A stretch of DNA of 51,022 nucleotides from Octopus bimaculoides (Eukaryota), in assembly GCF_001194135.2 (NCBI RefSeq), contig NC_068982.1, forward strand, positions 138,030,258 to 138,081,279, written 5' to 3'. The translations under genes and the position numbers were made by a program. The notes beneath the pieces were generated by a model, which saw nothing but the letters and a program-made list of their open reading frames with translations, had not been told where the DNA came from and searched no databases. This document shows, piece by piece, positions 22,621-47,300 of this stretch (position 1 is its first letter; each line of letters begins with the position of its first letter).

Positions 22621-22665
22621 TCACTCTCCTTTAGGTTCTTCATCTGTGTCTTCGAGAACTGAATC
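22621..22665 (-). CDS. Bcl-G-like final coding exon F (DSVLEDTDEEPKGE*)
   Basis: ttttctgcccacag|GAT TCA GTT CTC...GAG TGA; phase 0. Confidence 0.8.
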   Translation of the reverse strand, partial: DSVLEDTDEEPKGE

Positions 22666-25600
22666 CTGTGGGCAGAAAATAAGTAAATAAGTAAATAAAT
22701 AAATAAAAACATATGCATGGTCCAAATACTGAACTACTAATCCATCCCCTATTGAAGTTAGTTACTGCAGGAAAAAGGGTTGGTGCACTTTTTCCTGCAG
22801 AAGACTGGTCTGAAACCCAAACAACTGAAGAAAGCCACTAAGGAGATAGGCATAACAATCGAAACCAGCTTGAGGTAGCTGTGGTTGATAAGAAACTGCA
22901 GGTGGAACCCTTCTGCAGGTGAAGACTAATTCAGTCCTTTGCTGCCTCATTCAGGTGAAGCATATAAGCTAAAGGGCAAAACGCTTGTGTCCCTGAAATC
23001 CCTCCTGATTATACGGAAGAGTTTCCAACATTGCAACAGATTCAAAAGAAGAGCCTGCAACATTTCTGAGTAAATCCTACAGTTTCTGTAGGGTACAAAG
23101 CATATCTGATGTTTATTAAATAAATCATTTGGTGAAATAAACATTTTCACCAAGCGATTTCAAAATCAAATTATATTACTAAAGATAACATGTACCTCTT
23201 GGCATGGTACATAAAATAATTCTGTCATATTCAATTTGCCTGACTCACAGTCAAGTGGTAGAAAATGGGAAGAGCAGTAAATGTGACTTTCAACAATAAT
23301 TAACAGAATCTATCATCAACATGTGAAAGATACTTATCTATTTTACTGACCCAGGAGGAATGGAAGTCAAAAATAAAATATGATGATGCTGTTAATATAA
23401 TATTCCAGTTTTGAACATTCTATTGTGTTTTATAATTATAAAATAGTGACTTTTAACATTGGTACTTATAAATATATTTTAGGATAGTACAAGTCAACTA
23501 ATTTGACTGGTACATATTTTATTGCTCTTTACGGCACCAAAAAATCAAAAACAGAAATCAGTATTTTCTCTCCAAATGTAAAAAGGATATTAATATCACC
23601 ATCCTTGTTAACCTCTGGATATTTACTATCCCAAGTCCCCAAGGACTCATAGGGTCAGTCACCTGGCTTCCATGGTGATAAGTGACTGAGATTGTTGAGT
23701 GGGCTGGGGCAATGTTGGATGAAGTGTTTTACTCGAGAACGCAACATACCACCCAGTATGAGAATTGAAACCATGGTCTTGCAACTGTGAGTGCAACACC
23801 CTAACCACATAGCTATGTACCTTGGCAATTCGTATCGATTTCAAATTTTGGCAAGAGGCCAGCAATTTCAAGGAGGGCGATAGTTGATAACATCGACACC
23901 ACCGCTCCACTGGTTCTTATTTAATAAACCCCAAAAGAGTGAAAGGCAAAGTCGACCTCAGTGAAATTTGAACTCAGAACATAAAGACAGATGAAATGCA
24001 GATGAGCATTTTACCTGGTGTGTTAATGATTCTGCCAGCTTAGCACCTTACCTTCACAATCACTATCACATCACATTTAACTGATCTGACACTCTAACAC
24101 AGTGCTTCACATGCTAATTAAAAAGATGCAGAATAATTGATAGCACAATGTTTAACCCTATCTCACCAATACATTACAAACTATGCTCCTTTATACCCAG
24201 TTTAATTGTCTTCAGTCAAACATATATGATTTAGAAGCAATATATAGAATATAGAAATAATTCAAACAAGAAAAAATCTCTGTGGTTATACCTTAGTACT
24301 GACTACTATGATATTTCATCATCATCCATCATTTTAAATCCGGGTTTTGACCCTGTTAACAAGGGTGGTTGGATCTACCTCAATGCCATACCAACCGCCC
24401 TCACACCATCTCGCCCAGTGTTGGGCATCCTTCCTTCTCAAACCAACCCTCCCAATCTCCTCCTCCACCAGTCCCCTCCACATTTTTCTTGGTCAACCTA
24501 GCTGTCGCTGTCCTAAAACTCTAGCATCTTCTTCAGAACATGCTCCTCATCCCTCCCCAACATATGCCCATACCACCACACTCCATTCGCCCTTGTTAGC
24601 CGTTCCACTGATTCCTCCAACCCCAGTGTCCCCATCAAGCCGTCAGTCCTCTCCTTATCAAACAGCATCATGATAAAATGATATTTATGAGGTGAAAATG
24701 TCAAACATCTTTAAAATATTCCAACAAAGACTAAACATACGTACCCAACCACCTTTCTCCACAATGAATGCTGCACACTTATCCTCAAAGTATCGCAGAG
24801 TTAGTTCTTTTATCTGGGAAGCCATTGCACGAAAAGGTCCAACAAGGTTGATAGCTGCCTTGGAAAGGAAGAAGAGAGCTGCCACCTCTTGTAATCCACT
24901 CTTGTCTTTAGAGTATGCTTCAAAAGTCTCTTTGAAATTCTGATAGGTAAGTTGTTTAAGTATGTCTATGACAGCTTCACTTGGGAACTGACTCTGCAAA
25001 ACAATACATTTCACTTTTTATAATTTCTTTTTTTCTTAAAAGTAAATTCTAAATTAAAAATAAACAACATAAAAAGTAAAAAGATATTCAAGTTCTAATG
25101 ACTAAGCAGTTTAGTATATATTTGTTTCAGTCATTTGACTGCGGCCATGCTGGAGCACCGCCTTTAGTCGAACAAATCAACCCCAGGACTTATTCTTTGT
25201 AAGCCTAGTACTTATTCTATCAGCTTCTTTTGCTGAACTGCTAAGTTACAGGGACATAGACATGCCACCATCGATTGTCAAGCGATGGTGGGGGACAAAT
25301 ACAGACACACACACACACCTATATATATATATATATATATNNNNNNNNNNNNNNNNNNNNNNNNNNNNNNNNNNNNNNNNNNNNNNNNNNNNNATATATA
25401 TGGCTTCTTTCAGTTTCCGTCTACCAAATCCACTCACAAGGCTTTGGTCGGTCCGAGGCTATAGTAGAAAACACTTGCCCAAGGTGCTACGCAGTGGGAC
25501 TTAACCCGGAATCATGTGGCTGGTAAGCAAACTACTTACCACACAGCCACTCCTGCACCTATACAAATACATATAATATCAGCAGAATGACAGTGTATTT

Positions 25601-27730: not shown

Positions 27731-28518
27731 GCAATAACAACAACAGCAATAATAATAAAAACAATATTAATAATCATACTTTAATATCTTTACTTTGAAT
27801 TTTTAGAAAAGAAACTCTTAGAAAGTAGTTGACGATCAAATATAGTAATGGAGGTGCACATTTGATTAATTTTTAGGAGTTTAAATATTTGAGATGGAAA
27901 TTCAAATTATGCATACATAGGCATATATTAGAGTTAAATAATAAGTTTTTCATTCAAATTTGATGTTAATAAGTTCGATAAAAAAAAAAAACAGAAATTG
28001 TAATCATATTGATTGAGTTTTGTTTTACACAATATAAATTAACAACTAATTCGAATATTGTGATGACAGATGTAACATGAAACAGATACATTAAAATTTT
28101 GGGTAATTTAGTTTGAATGTAACATAAACACATGACGAATCATAATCAAATTAATTGCTTGTGCCAGAATGTAAGAACTTGAACTGAGAAGTAAAAAAGA
28201 CAATAATTACATTGGATTCCATCAATTGGACGTGGTCTAGCACAAGCACCTTCTGAATCAGATGCTGATGTCTGTGTATCAGCGAGAGTCATCAGTTTAT
28301 CAGCCACTCGTTTAAACATATCAGTTTTCGATTGCTCATCGCTAGGTTCAGAAGACATAACTCCACCGACAGCACCATCAATTTCATCAAGTTCTCTATC
28401 TGTTTATAACAAGAAAAATGGGGAAAATACATTCATTAAAATTTGAGTTTTTAACATAAAATACATCAAAACAAACACCCCACACCATTCACTATTTATA
28501 TAATTTGAGCAAGATGTA

Positions 28519-28549
<31 letters not shown>

Positions 28550-29257
28550 GGAGCCTGGTGTTGCCATCCGGTTTCACCAGTCCTCAGTCAAATCGTCCAA
28601 CCCATGCTAGCATGGAAAGCGGACGTTAAACGACGATGATGATGATGATGATATATATATATACATATATATGGGTGACACCCTTCAGTCATGACTGACC
28701 ATGGGATTGCACCTAGAAAGTTACCCTCTGAGGCACATGTCCAGGCAAGGTTGTTTATGGAAGACCAGCAGTCGTCCATGCATACCGGTCTCCCCTCTCC
28801 ACGCCACCAATGTTATCCAAGGGAAAGGCAAAGGCCGATGCAGCTTGGCACCAGTGACATCACAACTCATTTCTACAGCTGAGTGAACTGGAGCAATGTG
28901 AAATAAAGTGTCTTGTTCAAGAACACAACACACAGCCCAGTCCAGGATTTGAACTCACAACCTCACGATTGTAAGCTCAATGCTCTAACCACTGAGCTAT
29001 GTGCCTTCACATACATATATACATCATCTATGCCATTTTGTTTCTTATAGAAAGTCTGAGTATCTCAACTTGTAAAAGTCTTCCAAGCCACAAACCAGGG
29101 CAAGTATTTTCAAGGAGGATGAGCAATTGGCCATGCATGCAAGACACCCTTCTACATGCCAAATAGTGTCCTATGGAAGGTGGGAGTCTTACACCTTGGC
29201 ACCAGTATCACTGCAAGGCACTTCATCTAATATTCTAAGAATCATGCCAGTTCACAG

Positions 29258-29289
<32 letters not shown>

Positions 29290-30216
29290 CTATACAATTA
29301 AAACTATAACAAGTTTTCACTGAGATACCTAAATATATATCAACAAACCGGAGAAAATGATGTGAAACAATAACCAATTTTACCACATGCAATATATATC
29401 AAGCTGTGGCCATGCTGGGGCACTGCCTTGAAGGATTTTAGTTGAATGAATTGACTACTCCAGTACTCATATTTTTAAAGTCTGGTAATTATTTTATTGA
29501 TTTCTTTTGCCAAACTGCTAACTTATGAGGATGTAAACACATCAACACCAGTTGTCGAGCAGTGCTGGGGAACAAAAGATATATATATATGTATGTATAT
29601 ATATATATATATATATATATAGACAGAGAGAGAGAGAGAGAGAGAGAGGGTGGCCCAAAAGTAGGTTTACAATTATTCAACTATCTCTTTCACATTCATA
29701 TATTAACAGTTTAGATCTTAATTATAAAACAACATGAAACCATTATTTAGCAAGATGGAGCACCTCCACATTATGTGTTGACAGTAAGGGACTACCTTAA
29801 CCAAGCCTTTCCACAGTGTTGGTTTGGAAGACAGGGCAGCATTGAATGGCCACCACGTTCACCTGATCTGACACCAATGGATTTCTTTTTTGAGGATGGT
29901 GTAAAGACAAGGTTTATGAGAAGAATTTCAAAACAGTAAATGAATTAAAAGATTATATTTCTGAGGCATTCACTGAAATTGATGGAGATCGGAATTTGTG
30001 TTGCACTGTGTGTCAGAGTGTTCTAAAGAGGTTTGAAGAATGTTGGAATGTTGAAAGAGGATATTTTGAGCATCTGAGAGATTAAACATTGTCTGTTTAA
30101 GATGTGCAATAAACAATATGATTGTAAGATAGAAATTTAAATGTAATAAACTGTTTTAAAAGAGATTTAAAGTGCCTATGTGATAACTGTAAACCTACTT
30201 TTGAGTCACCCTGTAT

Positions 30217-30260
<44 letters not shown>

Positions 30261-33200
30261 CAATTGTGAGCAGCATATTTTATTGTCCTCAAAAGGAACT
30301 GCTACATTTTAAACAAAGGGAAAACATTGATGCCAAACTACCCATTTCCTCCCTCTGTAAAAAAATCTAAGTAATTTTCTGACCAGCAAGGGACTCATTT
30401 TATATTTGTGTAGATTTAAAAATATAATTACGACTTAGTTTTGGAAAACCTTTCAACAAGTTTATAACATATCACTATCATAATTCTTGTATTGGTCTCT
30501 TTAGTAATTTTGATGTAGAAAATCGAAAATGACAGCGAATACAAGCCAGTAAACATATCTACTCTCACCCCACTAACACCATTTCCCTGTTATCTCAAAA
30601 ATCGCACGTTTGTTCCCCACCACTTACCTAATAGAATGATTTATACACTCTATGCTATCTTATCAGTACAGAAATCGTCAGAGCTTAAAATAAAACGATT
30701 GTAGTTTGATAATTTCTTGACAAACCAAGTCAGAAATGAAATTTCACTTGAAACCATTTCACTTCACTTACATCACTATTACGTTAGAAAGAGCATGAAC
30801 ATCACAACTACCACTCCCCTTCTGTTAGGCAATAGACCTGTGTTTGAAACAATAACATGTAATAAAATAATTGTTTCTAATATAAGCAAAGAGCTGAAAT
30901 TTAGGAGGAGAGGCTTAGTCAATTAAATTAATCCCAGTATTTGATTGATATTTTATTTTGTCAACCTCGAGAGGATGAAACGCAAAGCTGATCTAGGTGA
31001 GAGTGAACCGATAATGTTAGTATGTGTTGATGCCATGTAAACAGCATCCAGTATACTCCATAAAGTGGCTGGTGTTAGGAAGGGCATCCAGCTGTAGAAA
31101 CCGGGCCAAAACAGACTATGGAAAATGGTGCAGCTCCAGTCAAACCATCCAACCAGCATGGAAAAAAGACATTACATGATGATGATTTCATACTGTAACA
31201 AATCTGCTAATCCAGTGGCCTTATCTAATAAAATAATTGCTTCCGATTTGGTAAAAAAAAGCAAACAATTCTGAAAGGAAGGAATTAGCTAATGCCATCG
31301 GCTCCTCATATTTCACTGCTACTTTATTTTATTGCTACAGAGAGATGAAAGGCAAAGTTGGCCTCAGTAGATTTTAAACTCACAATGTAAGGAGCCAGAA
31401 GCAATTTTTCTAGGGCTCTAACAACCCAACCAGCTTGCCACCTTGTCTAATGAAATAAGAGTTTCAGATTCTGGCACAAGGCCAGTAATGTTGCAGGAGG
31501 GAGTAAGTCATTTACATCAACCCCAGTACACAATTACACTTATTTTGTCAACCCCAAAAGATGAAAGGCAAAGTTGACCTCGGTGGAATTTGAACTCAGA
31601 ACATAAAGACAGACAAAATATTGTCAATCATTTTACCCACCATGCTAAGACTCCTGCCAGCTCACCATCTTGTATTTAATAAAATAATGGCAACAATAAA
31701 TGATTGCTAAATAAATTACTTTAAATAATAAACCTTTTTTTTTTTTTTTGAAAGAGTATGATTTAGTCAATTAAACAGAAATATGTATATTAGTTCTTAA
31801 CCCTAGGGAGATAAAGAAATAGAGCTTAGTGGTGAGACTGTTTTACAGAAAATTAGTAGAAGGTAAGTGCACGTAAGGTGGACAGAAAAAGGACTTCAAG
31901 GATACACTCAAAGCCTCACTGAAGAGCTTTGAGATCAACCCAGACACTGACCACCCTGCCAGGTGAAGTTGCATCAATAGGGGTGCTACCTCCTACAAAC
32001 TGAACAAGATTGTAGGGACACAAGTGTGCAAGTTCAGGGCCAATTCCTTGCCTTCAGTCGCAGCAGACCACTAGGGCCTGATCTGTTGCAGAGCCTTCCA
32101 AGCACACATTGGACTAATTGGCCACAGCCAGACACACCATGACCTGTCCTCTTCTCCATGTGATGTCCTTGGTCACCATTGGCAACAACAGACGAACTAA
32201 TAGTGAGACATTAAACTGGATCAGTTGGTATGCTGCTATCTTGGCCATTTTAATCATCATCATCATCATCACAGGAAAGAAACTAAATATTTTAACTGTC
32301 AATATAATAAAAAAAAGTGATTGTGTGATGTTCATGCCTTTCTCTGAGAACAATGACATTGGGAATTGATTCACCATTACTTTGGGATTAAAATCAACTC
32401 ATAGATTTCATTCACAGAATGTTGGACCTTATTTCTTCACTGATTTTAAACAAAAATCAAAAGTCCCCGCAGTCAATTCAGTGTGTTTATTAACTTCATT
32501 AACCCCAGAAGGACAAAAGACAAAGTCAAACTCAAAAGTACTCAAAATAAGAACATAAAATTTAGTAACTAAATACTGCAAAACATTCAAAACATTTTGT
32601 CCTTTGTGATTGTACCTGGTTGAGTCAAACCACCACCTTTATATATTGCTTGCCAATAAACTAGTAAGTTAATAAAGACAACAACAACATATACGAGAGG
32701 TGCAACAAAAGATAAATACATAGCTTAACTATAAGAATGAAAAAAAAAAACCATTTACCAGCTGTGTAGTACTGATGAAGACAATGAGTGATGAGTGAGT
32801 ACATAAAATACATTATTTTAGTTTGAGAAAGACAGAGAAACAGAAACTGAGATGTAGAAATATTCATGATACTATCAAGTCATTTAATCTGAACTAGTGT
32901 TTTCAGAGATAGCCAGGCCCATAGTAGTTGGGACAAGCTAGGGTTTGATAAAACAATTACATGAACAGGACACATAGGGTGCACTTAATTTTGATTTTTT
33001 AAAAAGGTTTTATTTTTACTAATTTGACCCTTTAGTATTTAAATTGGTCATATAAGGTCCAAATATTTTACCTATTTTGCTTTCAAATTGGCTAGATCTG
33101 GCCTCTCAAACATACCTTACAATGTCATTCTAAAAATAATCACATCATTGAAATTTTGAAGCTACAAGATTAATGCATGATTAATTCAAAATATTGCGAA

Positions 33201-33480
33201 TAAATAAGCATTACATTTTGACAGAGTAATCAATGCTAAAGGGTTAAGAGATTGCTTCAGAGTTTATTCTAAAACATATGTATATATACACCTATATACA
33301 CACATGCATGCTGCATAATTTATAACCGATCATAAACATGATTATGCGTTGTAGTGAGGAATTGCAAGCGTGCATGTGCTTTTAAATAACCCAAACAGTA
33401 TCAAAAATATTTCAACAGCTTTCCCAAAAAGTACATTAGACAGAGCAGTAAGAGAATACAAAATATGTATGCATATCTAC

Positions 33481-33513
<33 letters not shown>

Positions 33514-35799
33514 TATAGAGATACAAATACATTCATGCAAAGTATGAGAAACTTAAATATTAAAATGATAATCAGTTGAAATCAAGCAAGAAGCAGTGAA
33601 TTTTTAGTATTACATTTCCATAGGTCATAACAGAGGCTTACATTAATTTATGTGGCCTTTGCTATGATCTATGTAATGTACAGCAGTTAAGAATTAAATT
33701 TAAAAGAAAGTAAAAATTAAAATATATATATATTGTATTATTATTTTCACTAAACTAACTGTAAGCCCTGAAAGAACAATCGTTAAAGAGGTCATCATGC
33801 TCTTGTAGCACTTGTAAGCAAGGTGCTTTTTTTTTCTTTTTCTATTTATTTATTTTTTTTTAATATGGAAAGTTTGTAAGCTTCCAATGATTTTCGATAA
33901 AGAAAATTTTAGCTTGAAATACTTCCTGGACGATAACTTACCATTATTAACTTCAGTATTATCACAGTCACTGAGATGCTCATAATGCTCAACAGATGAT
34001 CTGCGTTGAGTCAGACCATCTGGTGTACAAACAGTCGTTACTTTCTCAACGTGTTCAGCCTTAAATTCAAAATTTCCTCGATCTGGAAGATCACTGGTAA
34101 AAACTGGATTAATGTTCAGATGCAAATTTTTTCGTGGAGCCGAAGTCTCAATAAGTGGATAGTCGTTCCCAGTTTCATTTTCTAATGCTATAATCTCATT
34201 GAGAACATTTGTGGTAGTGCTATCTTTATTATCCTTACTTTCTTCTTTGATTACATGTATAGCTTTATCATTGCCTTCAGATGCTGTTCGGCGATGGATG
34301 TTTTGAATAATATCCTTCTGCTCAGTGCTTTCTGTTCAATCAATAAAAATATGGTGGTAGTAATAGTGGTAGTAGTTGTTGTTGTAGTAGTAGTAGTAGT
34401 AGTACTAGTGGTTGAGCTTTTTCATTTAATTGTAAGATGTTCAATGCAGAGAATTTGGTAGTGAATGGGTATATAACTTTATCAATGCATGTTTGTAAAT
34501 GTGTAAACATGTTTATCAAAATCTTGCATGTCAATAGAATAAATTTCATTTGAAAAAAACCAGAAGCATGTGTGCTTGTGCTTATTATTTTAGGCCTCTT
34601 ATGATATATTAATGCAACAGGTAGCACAGTAATATAGCTAATACAACAGGTAGCATAGGAATGCATCCAATTTATTTTCTTGATTAAATGGACAAGTTAT
34701 ATCAATAGTCTCATTATCATTTATAATATAGAATAATTACTTTCTGAATTTAAACATAAAACGCATACACATATGCTTATATACACACACGTAGACAAAT
34801 ATAAATATTTATATAAGGGCATCCTATTTGTAATGTCATTTTTAGCACATAGAATGTTTTAATGTGCCTGGTTCTCTTTAATCTTATATACTTTGTAAAA
34901 GTTATCCATCCCATTCACCCAGCCAGAAACACATCAGGCCTAACAACATACTTTTTACACATAATGCCTAAGTGTCAGATCAGTGTTGCTGTGTATCAAA
35001 AACTGCACCTTGTTGGGGTTAGAGAAATGCATATACTACATACAGTACTATTCTGTTTCAAAAACAGAAGTGGTATTATAGAACTCAGATGAAACAGGAA
35101 TTTTGTCACAGATATATTTGTATGTGAAAAAGTAGATTAAAATATTTATTCCAAAGTAATTTAACAGAAGCAGGACTACTATTGTAAATGAATTACGTTT
35201 CATAATGATTTATCAAAAACTACTCTTTGAAAAAATTATTGAATGACAGTCAAAAACTTGACCTATGATTCTCTTTGACTCTTCTTTTAAATTGGCTGAC
35301 ATTTTACGAACAGAGCCAAGTGTCTAAATTAAAAAAAAAAAACAGGTGTCATGAATAAATTATCTAAATGACTGTGTAAAAGTTTATACAGCATTTCTTA
35401 CTGATGGATTTGAATTTCAATCACGGAGTAACTGGAGATAAAATATGCTTTTAATGTTGTTGTTGTTGCTGTTTGTTACAAATTCTGACCTGATTGGACA
35501 GATGAATAATCAGTATTTCTAGTCACGATTATCCAATAATTTCTTATTGTTCTGGTTTTGTAACCAATGTACCTTCTTTTCTTTGTTTTGAAGGAAAAAC
35601 AGAAAATAGTAAGGTGTGATTTGGGTGACAGAGATTCAGAGATTTGACAGTTATTTCTAGCAATGCTGAAGGTTATACGTTGACTCAATGATATTGGTGG
35701 TAATGAAGCCAGACATAACTATAGTTGCAGTAGTGTTTATTGCCATTTAGCATCAAGTCCAAACCAATGAGCAAAAGCATTCCAGCCATGAGCATTCCT

Positions 35800-35842
<43 letters not shown>

Positions 35843-37086
35843 AATGTCTAAGACTACATTGTTCTGCAAAGTGTTTTTACATTTTTTATTTTAAAGATGA
35901 TGGGTAAGGTGTAATGAGGGACATTTGGCTGCTATTTCTGGTACGTTGAGCCACTTTGACCGTTTACAAATGGGTCTATGTAAAGTGTTTGTGGGCAGTG
36001 TTATGCTTATGAAGGAGAACGAGACAAAAGTTACTATTATGCCATTACAGTAATCCCTCCACTTTCCTGGGAGTTAGTTTCCAAAACACCAAGCGATAGG
36101 TGAAAATCCGCAAAGTAGAAACAGTACTGTATTGTATATTTTTAAAAATTATTTTTACAATTTGTATATATTTATTTTATTATAAATGCCAAACAACATC
36201 ATGGAGGAATTGATGGAAGCTTAAATAATAAACCGTGATAGGTGACTCATGATATGGCGAGGGATTATTGTATTATAATAGACACCAGTTTAATGTCTTG
36301 ATAGGGTACAGGAAATGTTTGAAACACTGCCCGGCTATGAAGCTGCCACTGCCACTATCACTGTTAATAAATGAGCCAAGACAGAAACTGCTATGTCATC
36401 ACTCGACATGCTAGAAATAGCAGCCCAAACTCCTTCAAACCACAACCTACCTTAACTTGTTAGGAACAGCAGCCAAATATCTCTCAAATTACACCCTGGA
36501 GTTTAAAACAAAGGGGTACCCCTGACCCAGCAATACGTTCAGGTTATGACAGCTTAACAGAAAGAATGATGCGCCAGTACTCAGCTGGTGCTCATTACAA
36601 ATGAGTAGACTAGAACAAAGTAAACTAATGTGTCTTACTGAACGACACAAGGTGCTGCCTGATCCAGGAGTTGAACTAATGGCCTTACACTTATGAGCTG
36701 AACACTTTAACCACTAGGCCACAAACATCCACTGGAATCCTGTAAGATGATTTAAATAGATTTATAATATTTTTCAAGGAATATGTTATAATGAGAAACT
36801 GGGAAACTGGCTCTAAGGTCCTTACGGATTAATGTGGACTAACCCCTAACATTGGTTTCAGAAGATGTTTTCTTTCTTTCTTTTTTTGTTTTTTTGTAGC
36901 ACTATGTATTTCCAGTCACATTCTAACAAGGTGAATTGTGTGTAACGACAATAATTTTTGTGCAGTTAAATCTTAATCTAAGAAATGACACTACTTTACA
37001 GGGTGTGTGTATGTATATACATATATAACAACATATATAAGATATACATACATACATACATTAATATATGCACAAACACAAACATA

Positions 37087-37133
<47 letters not shown>

Positions 37134-39663
37134 TGTATATTATACCCAAAACACGTGAAAAATGGTTACTGGTGAACAGAAACAAGAAAGACCATGTTTA
37201 CAAAATTTAGAGAAGTGCTCAATTAGGATTTTAGGATTGTTCATTTTATTTCTAATGAAGACATTTCATTTGCTCAAGTGAAAAAAAAGAAGCTAATGTT
37301 TCCAAATTTTGTGAATTTGGTAAAAGGAAAGACCATTAAGAATTAATTATAGAATTTGTATATGATTAGTGCATTTTATAATTACAAGTAACATAATAAT
37401 AAATATGGTCTTCAACAATGTTACAAATAAACATCAAACTTCTTAAAACAATACACAGCATTTCTATAAACGTCTGTTTTTTTTTGTAAGTTTGTTAGTA
37501 GAAATAGTTATTGATAAACACAGATTCTGTCAATGAATTTAAACGATGTGCTAAAATTTCTAACTTCAAATATGTAAACATTATTATATGGCTAAAATAA
37601 TCTTCAGTTAAATCCCAAATCCACTTTCTTCAATTTAAGATATTTTTATATCATTCGATTTTGGAATTGGTAAATAAATAAATGTTATATGTGAAAAACA
37701 TTTAGTCATTATTGTAAAGGAATTTTGAATTTAAACTCAAAACTTAATGGAGGTAAAAATGCCTACAAACTGAATGATTACAATTTCAATTCCTTTTTTC
37801 TAAAGTTTAGCTAAATTTAGAGCAAAATGGAAAACAATTAGGAATTTCCTCTCATTAAATTTGGGATTTAACAAGGCATATATTTACATGAGAAAATATA
37901 TTTTCATACATAATATTTATCAACTAAGTCAGAAATCCCCAAAGTATCAATGACCAAGTAAAAGAAACAGTGTTGATTCAAACAGAAAACAAACACAACA
38001 TTTTTATGTAACCAAGCACAACATATTCTGTAAAATGCCACTATGACTTATAGTTTTATATCATGCAATTTGTAAATAGTAGATAGCATCATTGGTAATA
38101 TTCTAATCTGATATCAGGAGTGACAGTGCAACTCAGTTGAAATAAACACCACAAGGTATTTTTGTTTGAAAGCACAGGTTTATCAGTTATCTCACCAATA
38201 TGTACATTTTTCATCAATATACATATTGGAGAAATAGATACATATGTACAGCACTTGAAACATATTTTTTTACTGAGAAAATCAGACATTTCTTATTCAG
38301 AAGAGCAACAAATTAGCTCCAACTTCCTATTTTGCAAGTTTTCATTAAAAATTTTCAGGGTTTGCTAAGAGATATTTAAAAAAGGAAGAACTATAAATAA
38401 GAATACAAGTTTTGGCTTCATCTGATTTTCTCTAATCATCATCCACACTGTGTCAGAAGGTCACCACTCTGAAATGTTTTCCTCATCCATGTTCTTCCTG
38501 CAGACAAGGAGGGGAGAAGTTGCAACTGTTCAAGAACTGCATACATGTCAGGGGTTATGGGAAGCCTATGAAGGCCTTGGAACAGACCATTTTTTCAGAA
38601 CCCGTCGAGGGGAGGAGTTGCAACTGTTCAAGAACTGCATACATGTCAGGGGTTATGGGAGGCCTATGAAGGCCTTGGACACAGACCATTTCTTCAGAAC
38701 CCGTCATGATTAAAAAACACAGATTTATATAGCAAAATAAGATTTATATGAAATATATTGATGAGTGATAAAAGTGAGATAATAAATGAATAAAAACTAA
38801 CCTTTTCTCCCAAGAGAGAGCGTTTTCTTCCCATTTCTGTGAAGGGATTTTAATTTATTAAGAGATGATGGCAGTCCTTTCGAGCTTGAATTGTCTGAAC
38901 TTTCCTTAATGCTAAGATGGGATTCAATATGACGTGACTCACCATTCTTCTCTTTTATTTTCTTTGACTCCCAGATCTCCCCTTCACGAAGGGTAATCTC
39001 AGTTTTTTGGCAAGGAATATCTGATATTGTAGACGATTGACGAATGTGCGTCCTTGTATAGGTTGTCACTTCCTTCAGTACTTTATCTTTTGTCTTCACC
39101 TTCTTCTTTGTTTTCTTATCTTTCTTCTTTATGAAAACATTGTCATTGTTCGCCTCCTTTTCAGCTTGAATCTTTTTAAACTTTCTCGATATGTTGAACG
39201 ACATTCTCAGTCGTTCTTTCGCCCGTTTAAACAAGCTCTTCTTACGACGTACTCTCGAGTCATTATCAGAGCTAGACGACGATGAATTACTTGAGGAATG
39301 CCGAAGTTTAGAAGAATTACAAAGAAAGCCAGGAGCCGACGATGGTGACTCAATACTCGAACTACATTCCTCATCGCTTGCAAGAGGAGCAGTATTTTCA
39401 TAAGTAATTTCAGTTTTTGTCATTGAATGGAAACTGTCATCACTTAAAATGGATTCTTGTGATGCTTTTCTGTAACTGGCTCGGCGCTTGAAATTTGGTT
39501 TCTCCTCAAAGACTTCGAGTTCTGAAACTTTTTGGTAAACTGAGTTCATTGGAGTTATAGATGTGAGGCTTTCTTGATGCCTCTTCAAGAACTCTTCCAA
39601 GATAGCATTAGCTTCTTGTTTAACCATAGGAATGGTTGACTGCCTACGCCTTTTCCCAACCAT
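22621..39663 (-). CDS. BCL2L14: Bcl-2 family protein, Bcl-G (BCL2L14/BCL2L12)-like; 6 coding exons, 598 aa
   Basis: Exons 39663-38802, 34331-33942, 28399-28211, 27096-27035, 24993-24745 and 22665-22621 join in one open frame (intron phases 1,1,1,0,0; 1797 nt). C-terminal RYFEDKCAAFIVEKGGW|DSVLEDTDEEPKGE* resembles the Bcl-G BH2 and acidic tail, and the intron right after GGW is typical of the family. Family membership is firm; exact orthology is tentative. Confidence 0.85.
23660..24055 (-). mobile_element. tRNA-SINE head remnant plus family A SINE in intron 5
   Basis: gaattgaaacc...ctaaccac head, then tttcaaattttggc...gaaaggcaaagtcgacctc. Confidence 0.75.
24310..24680 (-). mobile_element. 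RTE-like LINE 3' fragment
   Basis: Minus ORF LERLTRANGVWWYGHMLGRDEEHVLKK, an RPRK-like motif and a (GAT)n tail. Confidence 0.7.
24745..24993 (-). CDS. Bcl-G-like coding exon E (aa 502-584): Bcl-2 core helices through BH2 GGW
   Basis: ttttgcag|AGT CAG TTC...GGT GGT TGG|gtacgt; 249 nt. Confidence 0.9.
25125..25560 (-). mobile_element. near full-length family B tRNA-SINE with internal microsatellite and gap
   Basis: Head aggtgcaggagtggctgtgtggtaag...ccgggttaagtccc at 25400-25560; 3' part at 25125-25320. Confidence 0.85.
25800..26620 (-). mobile_element. mixed degraded RTE-tail, SINE head and RTE ORF2 remnants
   Basis: ttctacagccagatgcccttcct (25835), SINE head at 26010-26165, decayed RT C-terminal similarity at 26200-26600. 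Confidence 0.55.
27035..27096 (-). CDS. Bcl-G-like coding exon D (aa 481-501), 62 nt
   Basis: attattttacag|CA CCA GAA...ACC TCT|gtaagt = SPELSDLEKELVEYILSIKTS; supplies the required change from phase 1 to phase 0. Confidence 0.8.
27238..27690 (-). mobile_element. two family A SINE copies between (ATT)n/(AAT)n tracts
   Basis: Core at about 27370 and 27583. Confidence 0.8.
28211..28399 (-). CDS. Bcl-G-like coding exon C (aa 418-480): DEID/G site and BH3-like helix
   Basis: ttataaacag|AT AGA GAA...; DRELDEIDGAVGG...MFKRVADKLMTLAD...PIDGIQ; donor T|gtaatt; 189 nt, phase 1-1. Confidence 0.8.
28552..29010. mobile_element. RTE-tail element (+) with (GAT)n, followed by a tRNA-SINE (-)
   Basis: ggagcctggtg...ccagtcctcagtcaaatcgtccaacccatgc..(gat)n; SINE head at 28880-29010. 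Confidence 0.7.
29647..30213 (+). mobile_element. Tc1/mariner deletion derivative with both TIRs and a DD41D (rosa-type) catalytic remnant
   Basis: TIRs GGGTGGCCCAAAAGTAGGTTTACAAT and ACTGTAAACCTACTTTTGAGTCACCCTG|TA; QDGAPPH...WPPRSPDLTPMD has 41 residues between the two aspartates. Confidence 0.85.
30905..31680. mobile_element. family A SINE copies (-) with an RTE-tail insertion (+)
   Basis: SINE cores near 30970, 31345 and 31560; ttaggaagggcatccagctgtag at 31075. Confidence 0.7.
31830..32200 (+). mobile_element. RTE-1/BovB-like LINE 3' fragment, degraded
   Basis: LFYRKLVEGK..GGQKKDFKDTLKASLKSFEINPDT...CCRAFQAHIGLIGHSQTH, ending in a C2H2-like motif. Confidence 0.75.
33028..33243. mobile_element. 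piggyBac-type MITE
   Basis: TTGA|CCCTTTAGTATT ... AATGCTAAAGGG|TTAA. Confidence 0.65.
33942..34331 (-). CDS. Bcl-G-like coding exon B (aa 288-417), 390 nt, phase 1-1
   Basis: ttgaacag|AA AGC ACT GAG...; open frame ESTEQKDIIQNIHRRTASEG...DNTEVNN; donor G|gtaagt. Confidence 0.8.
36048..36270. mobile_element. pogo/Tigger-type MITE
   Basis: TA|CAGTAATCCCTC ... GAGGGATTATTG|TA. Confidence 0.75.
38509..38705. repeat. 98/99-bp tandem duplication in the intron after exon A
   Basis: Units start at 38509 and 38607 and differ by only a few substitutions and one indel. Confidence 0.9.
38802..39663 (-). CDS. Bcl-G-like coding exon A (aa 1-287): BH4-like helix, Ser-rich and Lys-rich regions
   Basis: 288-aa ORF; acceptor ttttctatag|ctccaagATG (exon starts at 39670); donor AAAG|gttagt. 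Confidence 0.85.
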
Positions 39664-44322: not shown

Positions 44323-47300
44323 TTAATAAAGCGAAGGCCAAAGTGTGTGAAAATAGGGAGGAAAAAAACTGCGAAATCAACTTTAGTATACAAGCACTTA
44401 CGCACAGACGCAGATAGCTACACATACACACATAGCAACACACACACACACACANNNNNNNNNNNNNNNNNNNNNNNNNNNNNNNNNNNNNNNNNNNNNN
44501 NNNNNNNNNNNNNNNNNNNNNNNNNNNNNNNNNNNNNNNNNNNNNNNNNNNNNNNNNNNNNNNNNNNNNNNNNNNNNNNNNNNNNNNNNNNNNNNNNNNN
44601 NNNNNNNNNNNNNNNNNNNNNNNNNNNNNNNNNNNNNNNNNNNNNNNNNNNNNNNNNNNNNNNNNNNNNNNNNNNNNNNNNNNNNNNNNNNNNNNNNNNN
44701 NNNNNNNNNNNNNNNNNNNNNNNNNNNNNNNNNNNNNNNNNNNNNNNNNNNNNNNNNNNNNNNNNNNNNNNNNNNNNNNNNNNNNNNNNNNNNNNNNNNN
44801 NNNNNNNNNNNNNNNNNNNNTATATATATATATATATCTTAAAATCTACATACAATATTTATACAGTATAGATTCATACACAATGTATTATAACCTCGAT
44901 TAAGGAGCGAAGTTCTGATTAGATAATATAGTCTAAGAGATAGAAAAAGACAGGGTGGTCATGGTTTGGAAAGTCCTTGGTCCAACAGAGCTTAGGGCCA
45001 AACGACGATGACAAAAAAAAGGAGGAAGGGAAATCATTTCTTTCGTAGTTTAGGCAAGTAACTATGTGCCCCAGGACAGAGAGATGTGATAGTGATGACG
45101 ATTATAATAACTATACGAGACAAGAGGTCTGACAGTTATAACTAATTAGTTACATCGCATAATTAACAGTTCACTCTTGAAAGAGATGAGAGAATAAAAG
45201 AGGTTTGTTTGTTTGGAAACATGGTAAAACAATTTTTAAAAAATGGTCATTAAAGTGTTTAACTTACTCGCTTTCACTGGAATTTGAACTCATTTTGTGC
45301 TTTTGTTATCGTAGCGCTTTTTGAAGGACTTCAATAAAATGTGGGTCACCATAGACCAATAGAGTGAGAAATCTGTTACTTGTGAGTGTTGTTCTTAATG
45401 TTAGGGCGGGTATCTTTTGTTTTTTCTTCTCACAGATTTCACTAAGTTTCAGATACATACTTCTAGGTTTAGGGCGATGTGTAATAATATGCCTTTCGTA
45501 GTTTTCAGTAGTAGTTCTGACTTGATAGAGGGCAAAACTAAAGCCGATTGGCTCCGACACAGATAGACAGGTTCATACTATATGTATGTAAAAACTCACG
45601 ATGCATACCTGTGTAGTGGAGCCAAACGGACAAGCAAATAGTTGAAAAGATTCGTGAAATATGACCCGAAGTTGACAGCTCGACACTGAATCTCAAATGA
45701 CTGGACTACTTGATGTTTTAAGGACTATATATAAACGAGAAAGCCAACTGGCAGAAGCAATGTAGTGAACTATTATCTTTACATTGCTGAGTGACAAACC
45801 AACGAATGATCTGGGATAACAGAGGCACAAAAACACAAAACAGAACCTACAGTATGAATAATGTAGCATTAGTGTTGGACTGCAGGCATAGCAGTCCCAC
45901 CGGGGTCTGTTTTGCCTTCCATCTTTCCAAGGGGAGGGACTAATTAAGTAAAGTACCAGTAATACTACTATTCGGTTCAGTTCGCTAGCTTTGTGGCTAA
46001 TTACAAGGAAAATTTAATTTCATAAAATATATTTTTACTAAGTCATACACAGATAGATAAATAGGAAGAAAGGAAAACAATGTAAGTGTACTGTAATTAG
46101 TATTTGTAAAAGTTGTATAACTACTTAAAAACTACTCCATGTAAAGATGTGAATATAGATAAATGTGCGCGTGTGTCTGTGTGTATAGTGAGTAGAGAGG
46201 AAGCTACTAATACAAAATAGCAGTCTGCATTTGTTAGAGTTAAGTAGCCGGTAAGCTAGGTTTTAAGATGATTCATCGCTGCCCTTCTTTCCATGGTGAA
46301 TATGTCCATCAAACACCACAAGACCTGTGCATTAAACAATAGCTTAAAGAGAAGCTTATGTTTTTGTCTTCTATTTTTCTTTCTGTTATAATCGTTCCCA
46401 ACAATACTTCTAGAGATTTTCCATTCCGCAACATTCGAAGGGGCTCGTATTTTTAAATCCCTTACAGTTTACAATTCCCCCGGATTTTTAATTTCAATGT
46501 CAGGATCTTTTTTTCTGTATGAATATTTATCTACTTCCCGTAGTTACATATATATATATATATATATATATANNNNNNNNNNNNNNNNNNNNNNNNNNNN
46601 NNNNNNNNNNNNNNNNNNNNNNNNNNNNNNNNNNNNNNNNNNNNNNNNNNNNNNNNNNNNNNNNNNNNNNNNNNNNNNNNNNNNNNNNNNNNNNNNNNNN
46701 NNNNNNNNNNNNNNNNNNNNNNNNNNNNNNNNNNNNNNNNNNNNNNNNNNNNNNNNNNNNNNNNNNNNNNNNNNNNNNNNNNNNNNNNNNNNNNNNNNNN
46801 NNNNNNNNNNNNNNNNNNNNNNNNNNNNNNNNNNNNNNNNNNNNNNNNNNNNNNNNNNNNNNNNNNNNNNNNNNNNNNNNNNNNNNNNNNNNNNNNNNNN
46901 NNNNNNNNNNNNNNNNNNNNNNNNNNNNNNNNNNNNNNNNNNNNNNNNNNNNNNNNNNNNNNNNNNNNNNNNNNNNNNNNNNNNNNNNNNNNNNNNNNNN
47001 NNNNNNNNNNNNNNNNNNNNNNNNNNNNNNNNNNNNNNNNNNNNNNNNNNNNNNNNNNNNNNNNNNNNNNNNNNNNNNNNNNNNNNNNNNNNNNNNNNNN
47101 NNNNNNNNNNNNNNNNNNNNNNNNNNNNNNNNNNNNNNNNNNNNNNNNNNNNNNNNNNNNNNNNNNNNNNNNNNNNNNNNNNNNNNNNNNNNNNNNNNNN
47201 NNNNNNNNNNNNNNNNNNNNNNNNNNNNNNNNNNNNNNNNNNNNNNNNNNNNNNNNNNNNNNNNNNNNNNNNNNNNNNNNNNNNNNNNNNNNNNNNTATT

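Follow-up and report, generated by a model that had tools for sequence, protein, structure and literature searches.

Bid and Bfk (BCL2L15) carry caspase sites in a flexible stretch before the Bcl-2 homology 3 (BH3) helix, and cleavage activates them; in the case of Bfk, the caspase cut generates a fragment with stronger pro-apoptotic activity (PMC8814693). Here, a gene from Octopus bimaculoides is described whose product combines a candidate site of this kind with a layout similar to that of Bcl-G (BCL2L14). The gene is located on the minus strand of a stretch of 51,022 nucleotides (NCBI RefSeq assembly GCF_001194135.2, contig NC_068982.1, positions 138,030,258 to 138,081,279), which is designated as the window, and all positions below refer to it. 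The encoded protein of 598 amino acids (aa) includes an Asp-Gly site of caspase type, DEID425/G426, a BH3-like helix designated as BH3-A, and a C-terminal Bcl-2 core. Based on sequence, structure models, and the analogy with Bid and Bfk, a caspase cut after D425 may activate a Bid-like death switch, with a probability of roughly 40%.

Comparison with Described Bcl-2 Family Proteins

By layout, the nearest named relative is mammalian Bcl-G, which also lacks a transmembrane segment and has a long N-terminal region. Three additional likenesses were recognized by eye: a K-K-K-S motif in the N-terminal region, an N-terminal helix of Bcl-G with the sequence I-P-L...I-E-F-K-I-L, and a helix S-I-A-N-R-V-A-E-I at the place of BH3-A. 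Mammalian Bcl-G is, however, a protein of only about 327 aa, a length quoted earlier that agrees with the verified BCL2L14. The [GA]-D signature is gone from its upstream helix. The invertebrate family to which the octopus protein belongs mostly retains a Trp of the BH1 type.

Bid is a structured protein that bears a BH3 and an N-terminal helix, and the flexible sequence ahead of the BH3 contains its Asp/Gly caspase site. The site is LQTD/G in Bid, and LETD/G, IETD/G, DEVD/G, and DEID/G are observed in the family. The distance from the caspase site to the BH3 Leu is about 30 residues in Bid and 28 residues in the octopus protein. The BH3 sequences appear similar, and the new N-terminal Gly that would follow the cut fits the myristoylation pattern, as in cut Bid. 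Unlike Bid, which has about 195 aa and neither BH1 nor BH2, the octopus protein has a modular N-terminal region of 425 aa, keeps BH2 (GGW) and an acidic tail, and carries its Bid-like helix upstream of the canonical BH3.

Bfk has BH3 and BH2 without a transmembrane segment, as well as a pseudo-BH4 N-terminal helix and a DEVD site before its BH3, but its size is small and its loop spans about 20 residues. Among the top matches listed, none was to Bfk, either by sequence or by fold. Bcl-xL and Bcl-2 are the best matches to the core in both sequence and structure, and they also have a long flexible stretch with caspase sites before BH3; they differ in having a transmembrane anchor, an NWGR motif at BH1, a BH4, and an unstructured loop of about 60 residues. 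In summary, the logic of the octopus protein resembles Bid and Bfk, its layout resembles Bcl-G, and its core is closest to Bcl-xL. It is set apart from these systems by its size, the structured N-terminal modules, the tandem BH3 helices, and where the site lies with respect to a complete fold.

The Asp-Gly Site and Its Conservation

The candidate site, within ELDEID425/G426, was found where the preliminary description of this locus had placed it. Three DxxD motifs are present in the octopus protein while about two are expected at an Asp content of 6%, so that the motif alone is within chance, and the weight of the site comes from its conservation. The other two motifs, DNKD/S and DLPD/R, are not retained in the cuttlefish Sepia pharaonis, whereas the DxxD/G is. 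The cephalopod sites are DEID/G in O. bimaculoides, DEVD/G in O. sinensis, and DQVD/G in S. pharaonis, and AVGG follows in all three. In the global alignment of the octopus and cuttlefish proteins, residues 422-431 are 70% identical, against 17% for the flanking residues 410-421 and 432-437. Conservation of DxxD/G within a diverging loop had been proposed as a check on the site, and this is the pattern seen in the three cephalopods.

Across molluscs, a brachiopod, a nemertean, and a starfish, 18 of the 22 homologs carry an Asp-Gly at a distance of 18-60 residues ahead of BH3-A. The sequence around it is otherwise unalignable across the family. When residues were shuffled, a mean of 4.9 of the 22 homologs had an Asp-Gly and none of 2000 shuffles reached 18, a comparison that overstates independence because the homologs are related to one another. 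At the family sites, P4 is mostly D, L, or I, P3 is mostly E, and P2 is mostly V, P, or I, while P1 and P1' are fixed; the Pro at P2 is mainly contributed by a separate upstream turn, xTPDG, inside the same scan window. In many homologs two sites lie side by side, S-[LI]-x-[IV]-D/G and D-x-x-D/G, with examples such as LETD/G, IETD/G, LEID/G plus DEVD/G, and LCID/G. The cephalopod site pairs with the second of the two, and the first is represented by LETD/Q in cuttlefish and TEVN/N in octopus.

The AlphaFold2 models were made of the O. sinensis ortholog XP_029658016.1. In the model, the site is in predicted disorder (predicted local distance difference test, pLDDT, <50), between the last beta strand and BH3-A and 13 residues before the helix. 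Sequence and model together thus indicate a caspase-type Asp motif in a probably flexible stretch just N-terminal to a BH3 helix. The residues following the putative cut, GAVGG[VA], match the PROSITE N-myristoylation pattern PS00008 in all three cephalopods; this pattern is permissive, and the match is a lead only. A calcium-binding DxDxDG loop was considered as an explanation for the acidic cluster, and was rejected due to the wrong spacing and the absence of the cluster in cephalopods.

Two BH3-like Helices

BH3-A contains L453-MTLA-D458, at the reported distance of 28 residues past D425. The family consensus is EKExxYxKIAxKLxxI[GA]DxY, in which the Ala, Leu, and Asp are nearly invariant, and it constitutes a full BH3 signature. 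When a 30-column profile of BH3-A was compared with 177,635 PDB sequences, the top match was a Bid BH3 peptide (E-value 0.01), followed by residues 75-96 of full-length Bid, and Bid accounted for 5 of the 13 matches. Positions 43-106 of Pfam BID, corresponding to the cleavage loop and BH3, align with the starfish homolog at its residues 514-586 (E-value 7e-4). This homolog is the only one with a Pfam BID match, at 19.7 bits against the cut-off of 25, and no match was obtained for the octopus protein. The designation "Bid-like" used previously is consistent with both comparisons.

The preliminary description took LMTLAD as the BH3 of a Bcl-G scaffold. Its BH3-like character is retained here, but it is not the counterpart of the Bcl-G BH3. 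The BH3 sequences of Bcl-xL (LREAGDEF) and Bcl-G (LLKYSGDQL) align to a second family motif, LExxIxxxLRxxGD, instead of BH3-A. In the octopus protein the second motif is represented by the helix encoded by exon C2, LEKELVEYILSIKTS, from which the G-D is lost. The canonical alpha-2 BH3 signature L-x-x-x-[GA]-D is therefore absent from octopus, where L-E-K-E-L-V-E-Y-I-L-S-I-K-T-S is found against L-R-x-x-G-D in other phyla. In cephalopods, both the canonical BH3 and the BH1-type Trp are gone, and the upstream Bid-type helix is retained. This combination of loss and retention suggests a functional shift within the family.

The Bcl-2 Core

A family profile (A2) was constructed from the C-terminal 160-200 residues of 21 sequences. 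Searched against PDB, it matched Bcl-xL, Bax, and Bcl-2 with E-values from 1e-11 to 1e-9, the value for Bcl-xL being 1e-11. The PDB search with a single sequence returned no match, and the family profile was needed. Pfam Bcl-2 (PF00452) is matched by all 21 family members, each below the gathering score of 31.4 bits: the octopus protein scores 18-21 bits (E-values 5e-4 to 4e-3), and the best of 10 full-length homologs scores 29.8 bits. In the AlphaFold2 models the core is predicted with pLDDT 92-97, within a full-length model whose predicted template modelling score is 0.34. Foldseek aligned the models to Bcl-xL with probability 1.0, a template modelling score of 0.57 over 108 columns, and a root-mean-square deviation of 3.6. 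The presence of a Bcl-2 core, which had been proposed from the letters alone, is thus supported by both the profile and the fold.

The BH2 motif K-G-G-W is present at residues 581-584; the G-G is invariant across the family and the W nearly so. At the position of the BH1-type Trp, octopus has S-G-L-Q-E-V in place of the G-W-x-Q of most homologs and the N-W-G-R of Bcl-xL. A transmembrane segment is absent from the octopus protein, and its C-terminus is an acidic tail. The C-termini read G-G-W-D-S-x-x-x-E-x-D-S-E-L-D in most homologs, H-E-E-V-D in mammalian Bcl-G, and D-E-E-P-K-G-E in octopus; an acidic C-terminus with a final Asp is kept from starfish to mammals, octopus excepted.

For the comparison with Bcl-G, the human BCL2L14 query was 100% identical to a database protein, and the proteins closely related to it bear the name "apoptosis facilitator Bcl-2-like protein 14". 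An hhalign comparison of A2 with 15 named mammalian BCL2L14 sequences gave a probability of 92% and an E-value of 6e-7 over 111 columns, from BH3 to BH2 and through the tail to the last residue, in agreement with the relationship to Bcl-G suggested earlier. The match with human Bcl-G was restricted to the C-terminus when the full-length family alignment was used, and hhalign of the N-terminal helix profile against BCL2L14 was not significant. Although the layout is Bcl-G-like, the family profile scores Bcl-xL and Bax above Bcl-G. Strict orthology to BCL2L14 is not claimed because of the better score of Bcl-xL.

Structured Modules in the N-terminal Region

The region between the N-terminal helix and the core had been described as a Ser/Lys/acidic low-complexity loop. 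The composition of residues 31-417 (Ser 14.7%, Lys 11.9%, Glu 9.8%) is as described, but the region is not a plain loop: it contains motifs shared across phyla, a basic helix, and five predicted strands with pLDDT 84-95.

The N-terminal helix itself is conserved in 18 long homologs with the consensus TxPEVxxDAxxILEEFL, and it corresponds to residues 26-49 of XP_029658016.1 (pLDDT about 92) in the AlphaFold2 model. The term "BH4-like" for this helix belongs to the preliminary description. The basic helix has the motif RKKKSxFKRAxERL in most long homologs and corresponds to the modelled helix 159-187 of XP_029658016.1 (pLDDT about 84). Its sequence RKKKSLFKRAKERL is strongly conserved from starfish to octopus, and in mammalian Bcl-G a comparable position is occupied by an invariant K-K-K-S-S-W. 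The helix might bind membranes or nucleic acids.

The beta module consists of five predicted strands of 15-23 residues each and is recognizable from the cross-phylum motifs K-H-T-H/E-[IV]-W-E and T-P-D-G. In XP_029658016.1, the strands of part 1 are residues 209-231, 234-253, and 258-272 (pLDDT 84-95), and those of part 2 are residues 390-404 and 410-424 (pLDDT about 94), with the conserved xTPDG. Neither Foldseek nor Pfam yielded a meaningful match for the module, and TolC, C9, and pneumolysin appeared at probability <0.2. It may represent an undescribed module. In the S. pharaonis protein CAE1311249.1, the counterpart of residues 152-265 of the window protein is missing, and with it most of the basic helix and the whole of part 1 of the beta module; the cause is either a true deletion or incomplete annotation.

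Members and Relatives of the Family

An exhaustive HMMER search with exon D revealed 68 relatives, and the full-length ones have 500-930 aa. They were found from cuttlefish, gastropods, bivalves, the brachiopod Lingula, the nemertean Tubulanus, and the starfish Acanthaster. All family members are named "uncharacterized" or "hypothetical" in the databases, or carry an evident misnomer. The octopus gene is best explained as the cephalopod representative of an ancient Bcl-2 family branch that has lacked annotation; this branch occurs in molluscs and also in a brachiopod, a nemertean, and a starfish. The 68 relatives matched in this single-exon search included no vertebrate BCL2L14. A word-indexed protein search with exons C and D returned a single match, an exon-D fragment of 85 aa, and that with the family profile returned 10 matches, none from vertebrates, among 8000 candidates.

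The contigs of the 85-aa fragment (L001-L007) include only exon D without exon C, and are uninformative on the conservation of the site. In another cephalopod (Logan run ERR12945500), an intronless gene for a 620-aa transporter of the major facilitator superfamily (MFS) type is located about 0.8 kb upstream of the exon-D ortholog. This gene, at L001:434-2296, is on the strand opposite to the locus and is probably nested in an intron; the octopus window has no counterpart of it.

Gene Structure and the Window

The spliced protein was rebuilt from the window with six exons on the minus strand, from 39663 to 22621, giving 1797 nt and 598 aa in exact agreement with the splice model proposed before. 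All six exons are bordered by canonical GT-AG signals, with AG acceptors and GT donors, and their phases are compatible. O. sinensis XP_029658016.1 (606 aa, "uncharacterized protein LOC115232331") is collinear with the rebuilt protein and 95.7% identical over all 598 residues. Since that protein was annotated separately, every exon junction is independently supported, including the joining of exon C, which proceeds through exon C2. Exon A is 98.6% identical to the O. sinensis protein P0071 in tblastn, and exon E is 100% identical to its O. sinensis equivalent. Joining exon C directly to exon D was rejected because it creates a stop codon (T+AG = TAG), a problem solved by the 62-nt exon C2; a weak alternative acceptor for the same join was dropped once the O. 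sinensis protein revealed exon C2. The interval 28211-39663 originally assigned to the gene covers exons A to C, while the Bcl-2 core (exons C2, D, and E) falls outside it. In O. sinensis, four isoforms differ in the first exon only, and one of them begins with the same MVGKRRR. An upstream segment of the window is likely an alternative first coding exon resembling that of O. sinensis isoform X1. The features are summarized in Table 1.

Table 1. [quoted passage not shown]
Feature	Position in the window	Strand	Description
Likely alternative first coding exon	45302..45352	-	88% identity, E-value 0.001, to residues 1-17 of O. sinensis P0071 (tblastn)
Exon A	38802..39663	-	ATG, residues 1-287 and first base of codon 288; donor AAAG/gttagt; N-terminal helix, disordered Ser-rich stretches, basic helix, beta module part 1
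N-terminal helix	39562..39633	-	Residues 11-34 (IPMVKQEANAILEEFLKRHQESLT); EANAILEEFLKRH at residues 17-29
Basic helix	39148..39234	-	Residues 144-172 (RRKKSLFKRAKERLRMSF...)
Predicted beta module, part 1	38893..39084	-	Residues 194-257; three long strands
Exon B	33942..34331	-	Residues 288-417; acceptor ttgattgaacag/, donor AATG/gtaagt
Predicted beta module, part 2	33967..34071	-	Residues 375-409; hairpin around the conserved T-P-D-G turn
Exon C	28211..28399	-	Residues 418-480 and first base of codon 481; linker with DEID/G and Bid-type BH3 helix
Candidate caspase-type site	28374..28388	-	D422-E-I-D425/G426, within ELDEID425/G426
BH3-A helix	28266..28340	-	Residues 438-462; L453-MTLA-D458 at 28295-28278; helix in AlphaFold2
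Exon C2	27035..27096	-	62 nt; finishes codon 481 (S), then residues 482-501 (PELSDLEKELVEYILSIKTS)
Exon D	24745..24993	-	Residues 502-584; Bcl-2 core from alpha-3/4 to the BH2 motif (GGW)
Exon E	22621..22665	-	Acidic tail DSVLEDTDEEPKGE and stop codon; no transmembrane segment
Open reading frame fragment	2631..3302	+	Resembles a mobile-element remnant
Open reading frame fragment	24516..24704	-	Resembles a mobile-element remnant
Open reading frame fragment	29775..29939	+	Resembles a mobile-element remnant

The window consists of AT-rich animal DNA in which assembly gaps and microsatellites occur. Among the three open reading frame fragments that resemble mobile-element remnants, one has a sub-threshold match to a Pfam PHD finger (E-value 9e-5), and Pfam scans of the other open reading frames of the window gave nothing beyond it. 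Judged by eye, the fragment directly downstream of exon D reads like the tail of a reverse transcriptase, and the fragment inside the intron between exons B and C contains a mariner-type W-P-P-R-S-P-D-L-T-P motif.

Proposed Mechanism and Alternative Explanations

In the proposed mechanism, a caspase would cut after D425 in the disordered linker and separate the N-terminal part of 425 residues from a fragment of 173 residues (426-598). Before the cut, the N-terminal part may hold the protein in an inert or tethered state, acting as its inhibitor or tether. [quoted passage not shown] Its new N-terminus, GAVGGV, might be N-myristoylated and thereby provide the membrane anchor which the protein otherwise lacks. 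The preliminary description had envisaged a BH3-exposing fragment of 173 aa. The size and the inclusion of BH3-A stand, but the whole Bcl-2 fold, lacking a transmembrane segment, would come along with the BH3 instead of leaving it simply exposed. Caspases able to cut DEVD substrates are present in oyster (PMC3923871).

Several points weigh against this mechanism. Cleavage, binding, and killing activity are deduced from sequence and models, and the models represent the O. sinensis ortholog, 95.7% identical, instead of the window protein. The matches to Bid and Pfam BID are weak and under the curated thresholds. The octopus BH3-A has Gln instead of an aromatic residue at its fourth hydrophobic position, and the motif is somewhat eroded; the BH1-type Trp and the canonical BH3 are both degenerate in cephalopods. 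No D/G was found in the scan window in 4 of the 22 homologs, oyster included, and the relatedness of the homologs inflates the contrast with the shuffled sequences. Where the D/G is present, the strictness of Gly at P1' exceeds the requirement of caspases. Mammalian Bcl-G has no D/G at the matching place (EAVD-P), and knock-out and cell studies found the mouse and human proteins not to be pro-apoptotic (PMC3481120, PMC6985252).

The strict Gly and the results on Bcl-G in apoptosis also speak for the alternative that the Asp-Gly block is a binding or structural motif, such as an acidic docking site or a turn, in a protein with a non-apoptotic role in trafficking, secretion, or inflammation control, as for mammalian Bcl-G, which is dispensable for apoptosis (PMC3481120, PMC6985252, PMC10244440). 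The invariant P1' Gly is stricter than caspases require, and acidic residues cluster near the site in many homologs. A second conserved D-G, in xTPDG about 33 residues upstream, is in a predicted beta hairpin and clearly structural. The DEID/G site, on the contrary, is in predicted disorder outside any fold, its P4-P2 residues vary as in caspase sites (D/L/I; E; aliphatic) with P1 and P1' alone fixed, and its placement before a Bid-type BH3 parallels Bid and Bfk. A non-protease motif is considered unlikely, though a serious competitor. It is improbable, to a greater degree, that a caspase cuts the site without operating a death switch, either inactivating the protein or freeing it from tethering by the basic helix and the beta module, with a change in location or turnover. 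Many caspase substrates are bystanders or are inactivated by the cut; here, the Bcl-2 fold would be left whole, not opened, and the N-terminal part has conserved structured modules of its own. Conservation in multiple phyla, however, argues for a selected function of the cut, and the adjoining Bid-type BH3 suggests a signalling output.

The use of the site by a different Asp/Gly protease such as Taspase1 is very unlikely. The recognition core of Taspase1 is Q-[FILV]-D/G-x-D-D. An aliphatic P2, Asp at P1, and Gly at P1' are the fixed features of the family sites. The cuttlefish site QVD/G (E-G-D-Q-V-D/G-A, CAE1311249.1 residues 325-331) resembles this core, and several gastropod sites carry G-D-x-D after the cut. 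Gln at P3 is nevertheless found in only two of the listed sites, and Glu is found in octopuses; the octopus sequence E-I-D/G-A-V-G, with A-V-G instead of x-D-D at P2'-P4', departs from the motif, and the known Taspase1 substrates are nuclear factors. That an acidic protein of low complexity contains DEID/G merely by chance is scarcely credible. The number of DxxD motifs alone would allow it, but the selective retention of DxxD/G in cuttlefish and the failure of every shuffle to reach the observed family count of D/G already disfavour it. The caspase-activated death switch is retained as the working explanation of the site. A broader proposition, drawn from the same sequences, is doubtful: the family could be the functional equivalent, perhaps the ancestral form, of Bid in molluscs and other invertebrate phyla, in which a caspase-cut and possibly myristoylated BH3 donor would link caspase activity to mitochondrial permeabilisation.

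Implications for Molluscan Apoptosis

No BH3-only homolog was found in the whole phylum Mollusca in a published survey (PMC5550854), and Bid was reported to be "conspicuously absent" from the bobtail squid transcriptome (PMC9389742). As no BH3-only protein or Bid is reported there, the triggering of Bax/Bak in molluscs is unexplained. The survey of apoptosis genes in lophotrochozoans does not mention the family described here (PMC11463336), and the evolutionary conservation of Bcl-G was an open question in a review in 2023 (PMC10244440).

In the widespread "uncharacterized" family, a layout like that of Bcl-G, a BH3 of the Bid type, and a conserved site of caspase type come together. The family offers a concrete candidate for the Bid-like switch reported missing in molluscs, in which both the residue (D425) and the fragment (426-598) are specified. 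Even if the death-switch hypothesis fails, the family would still extend Bcl-G-like proteins to invertebrates and reveal new conserved modules in what was supposed to be a loop.

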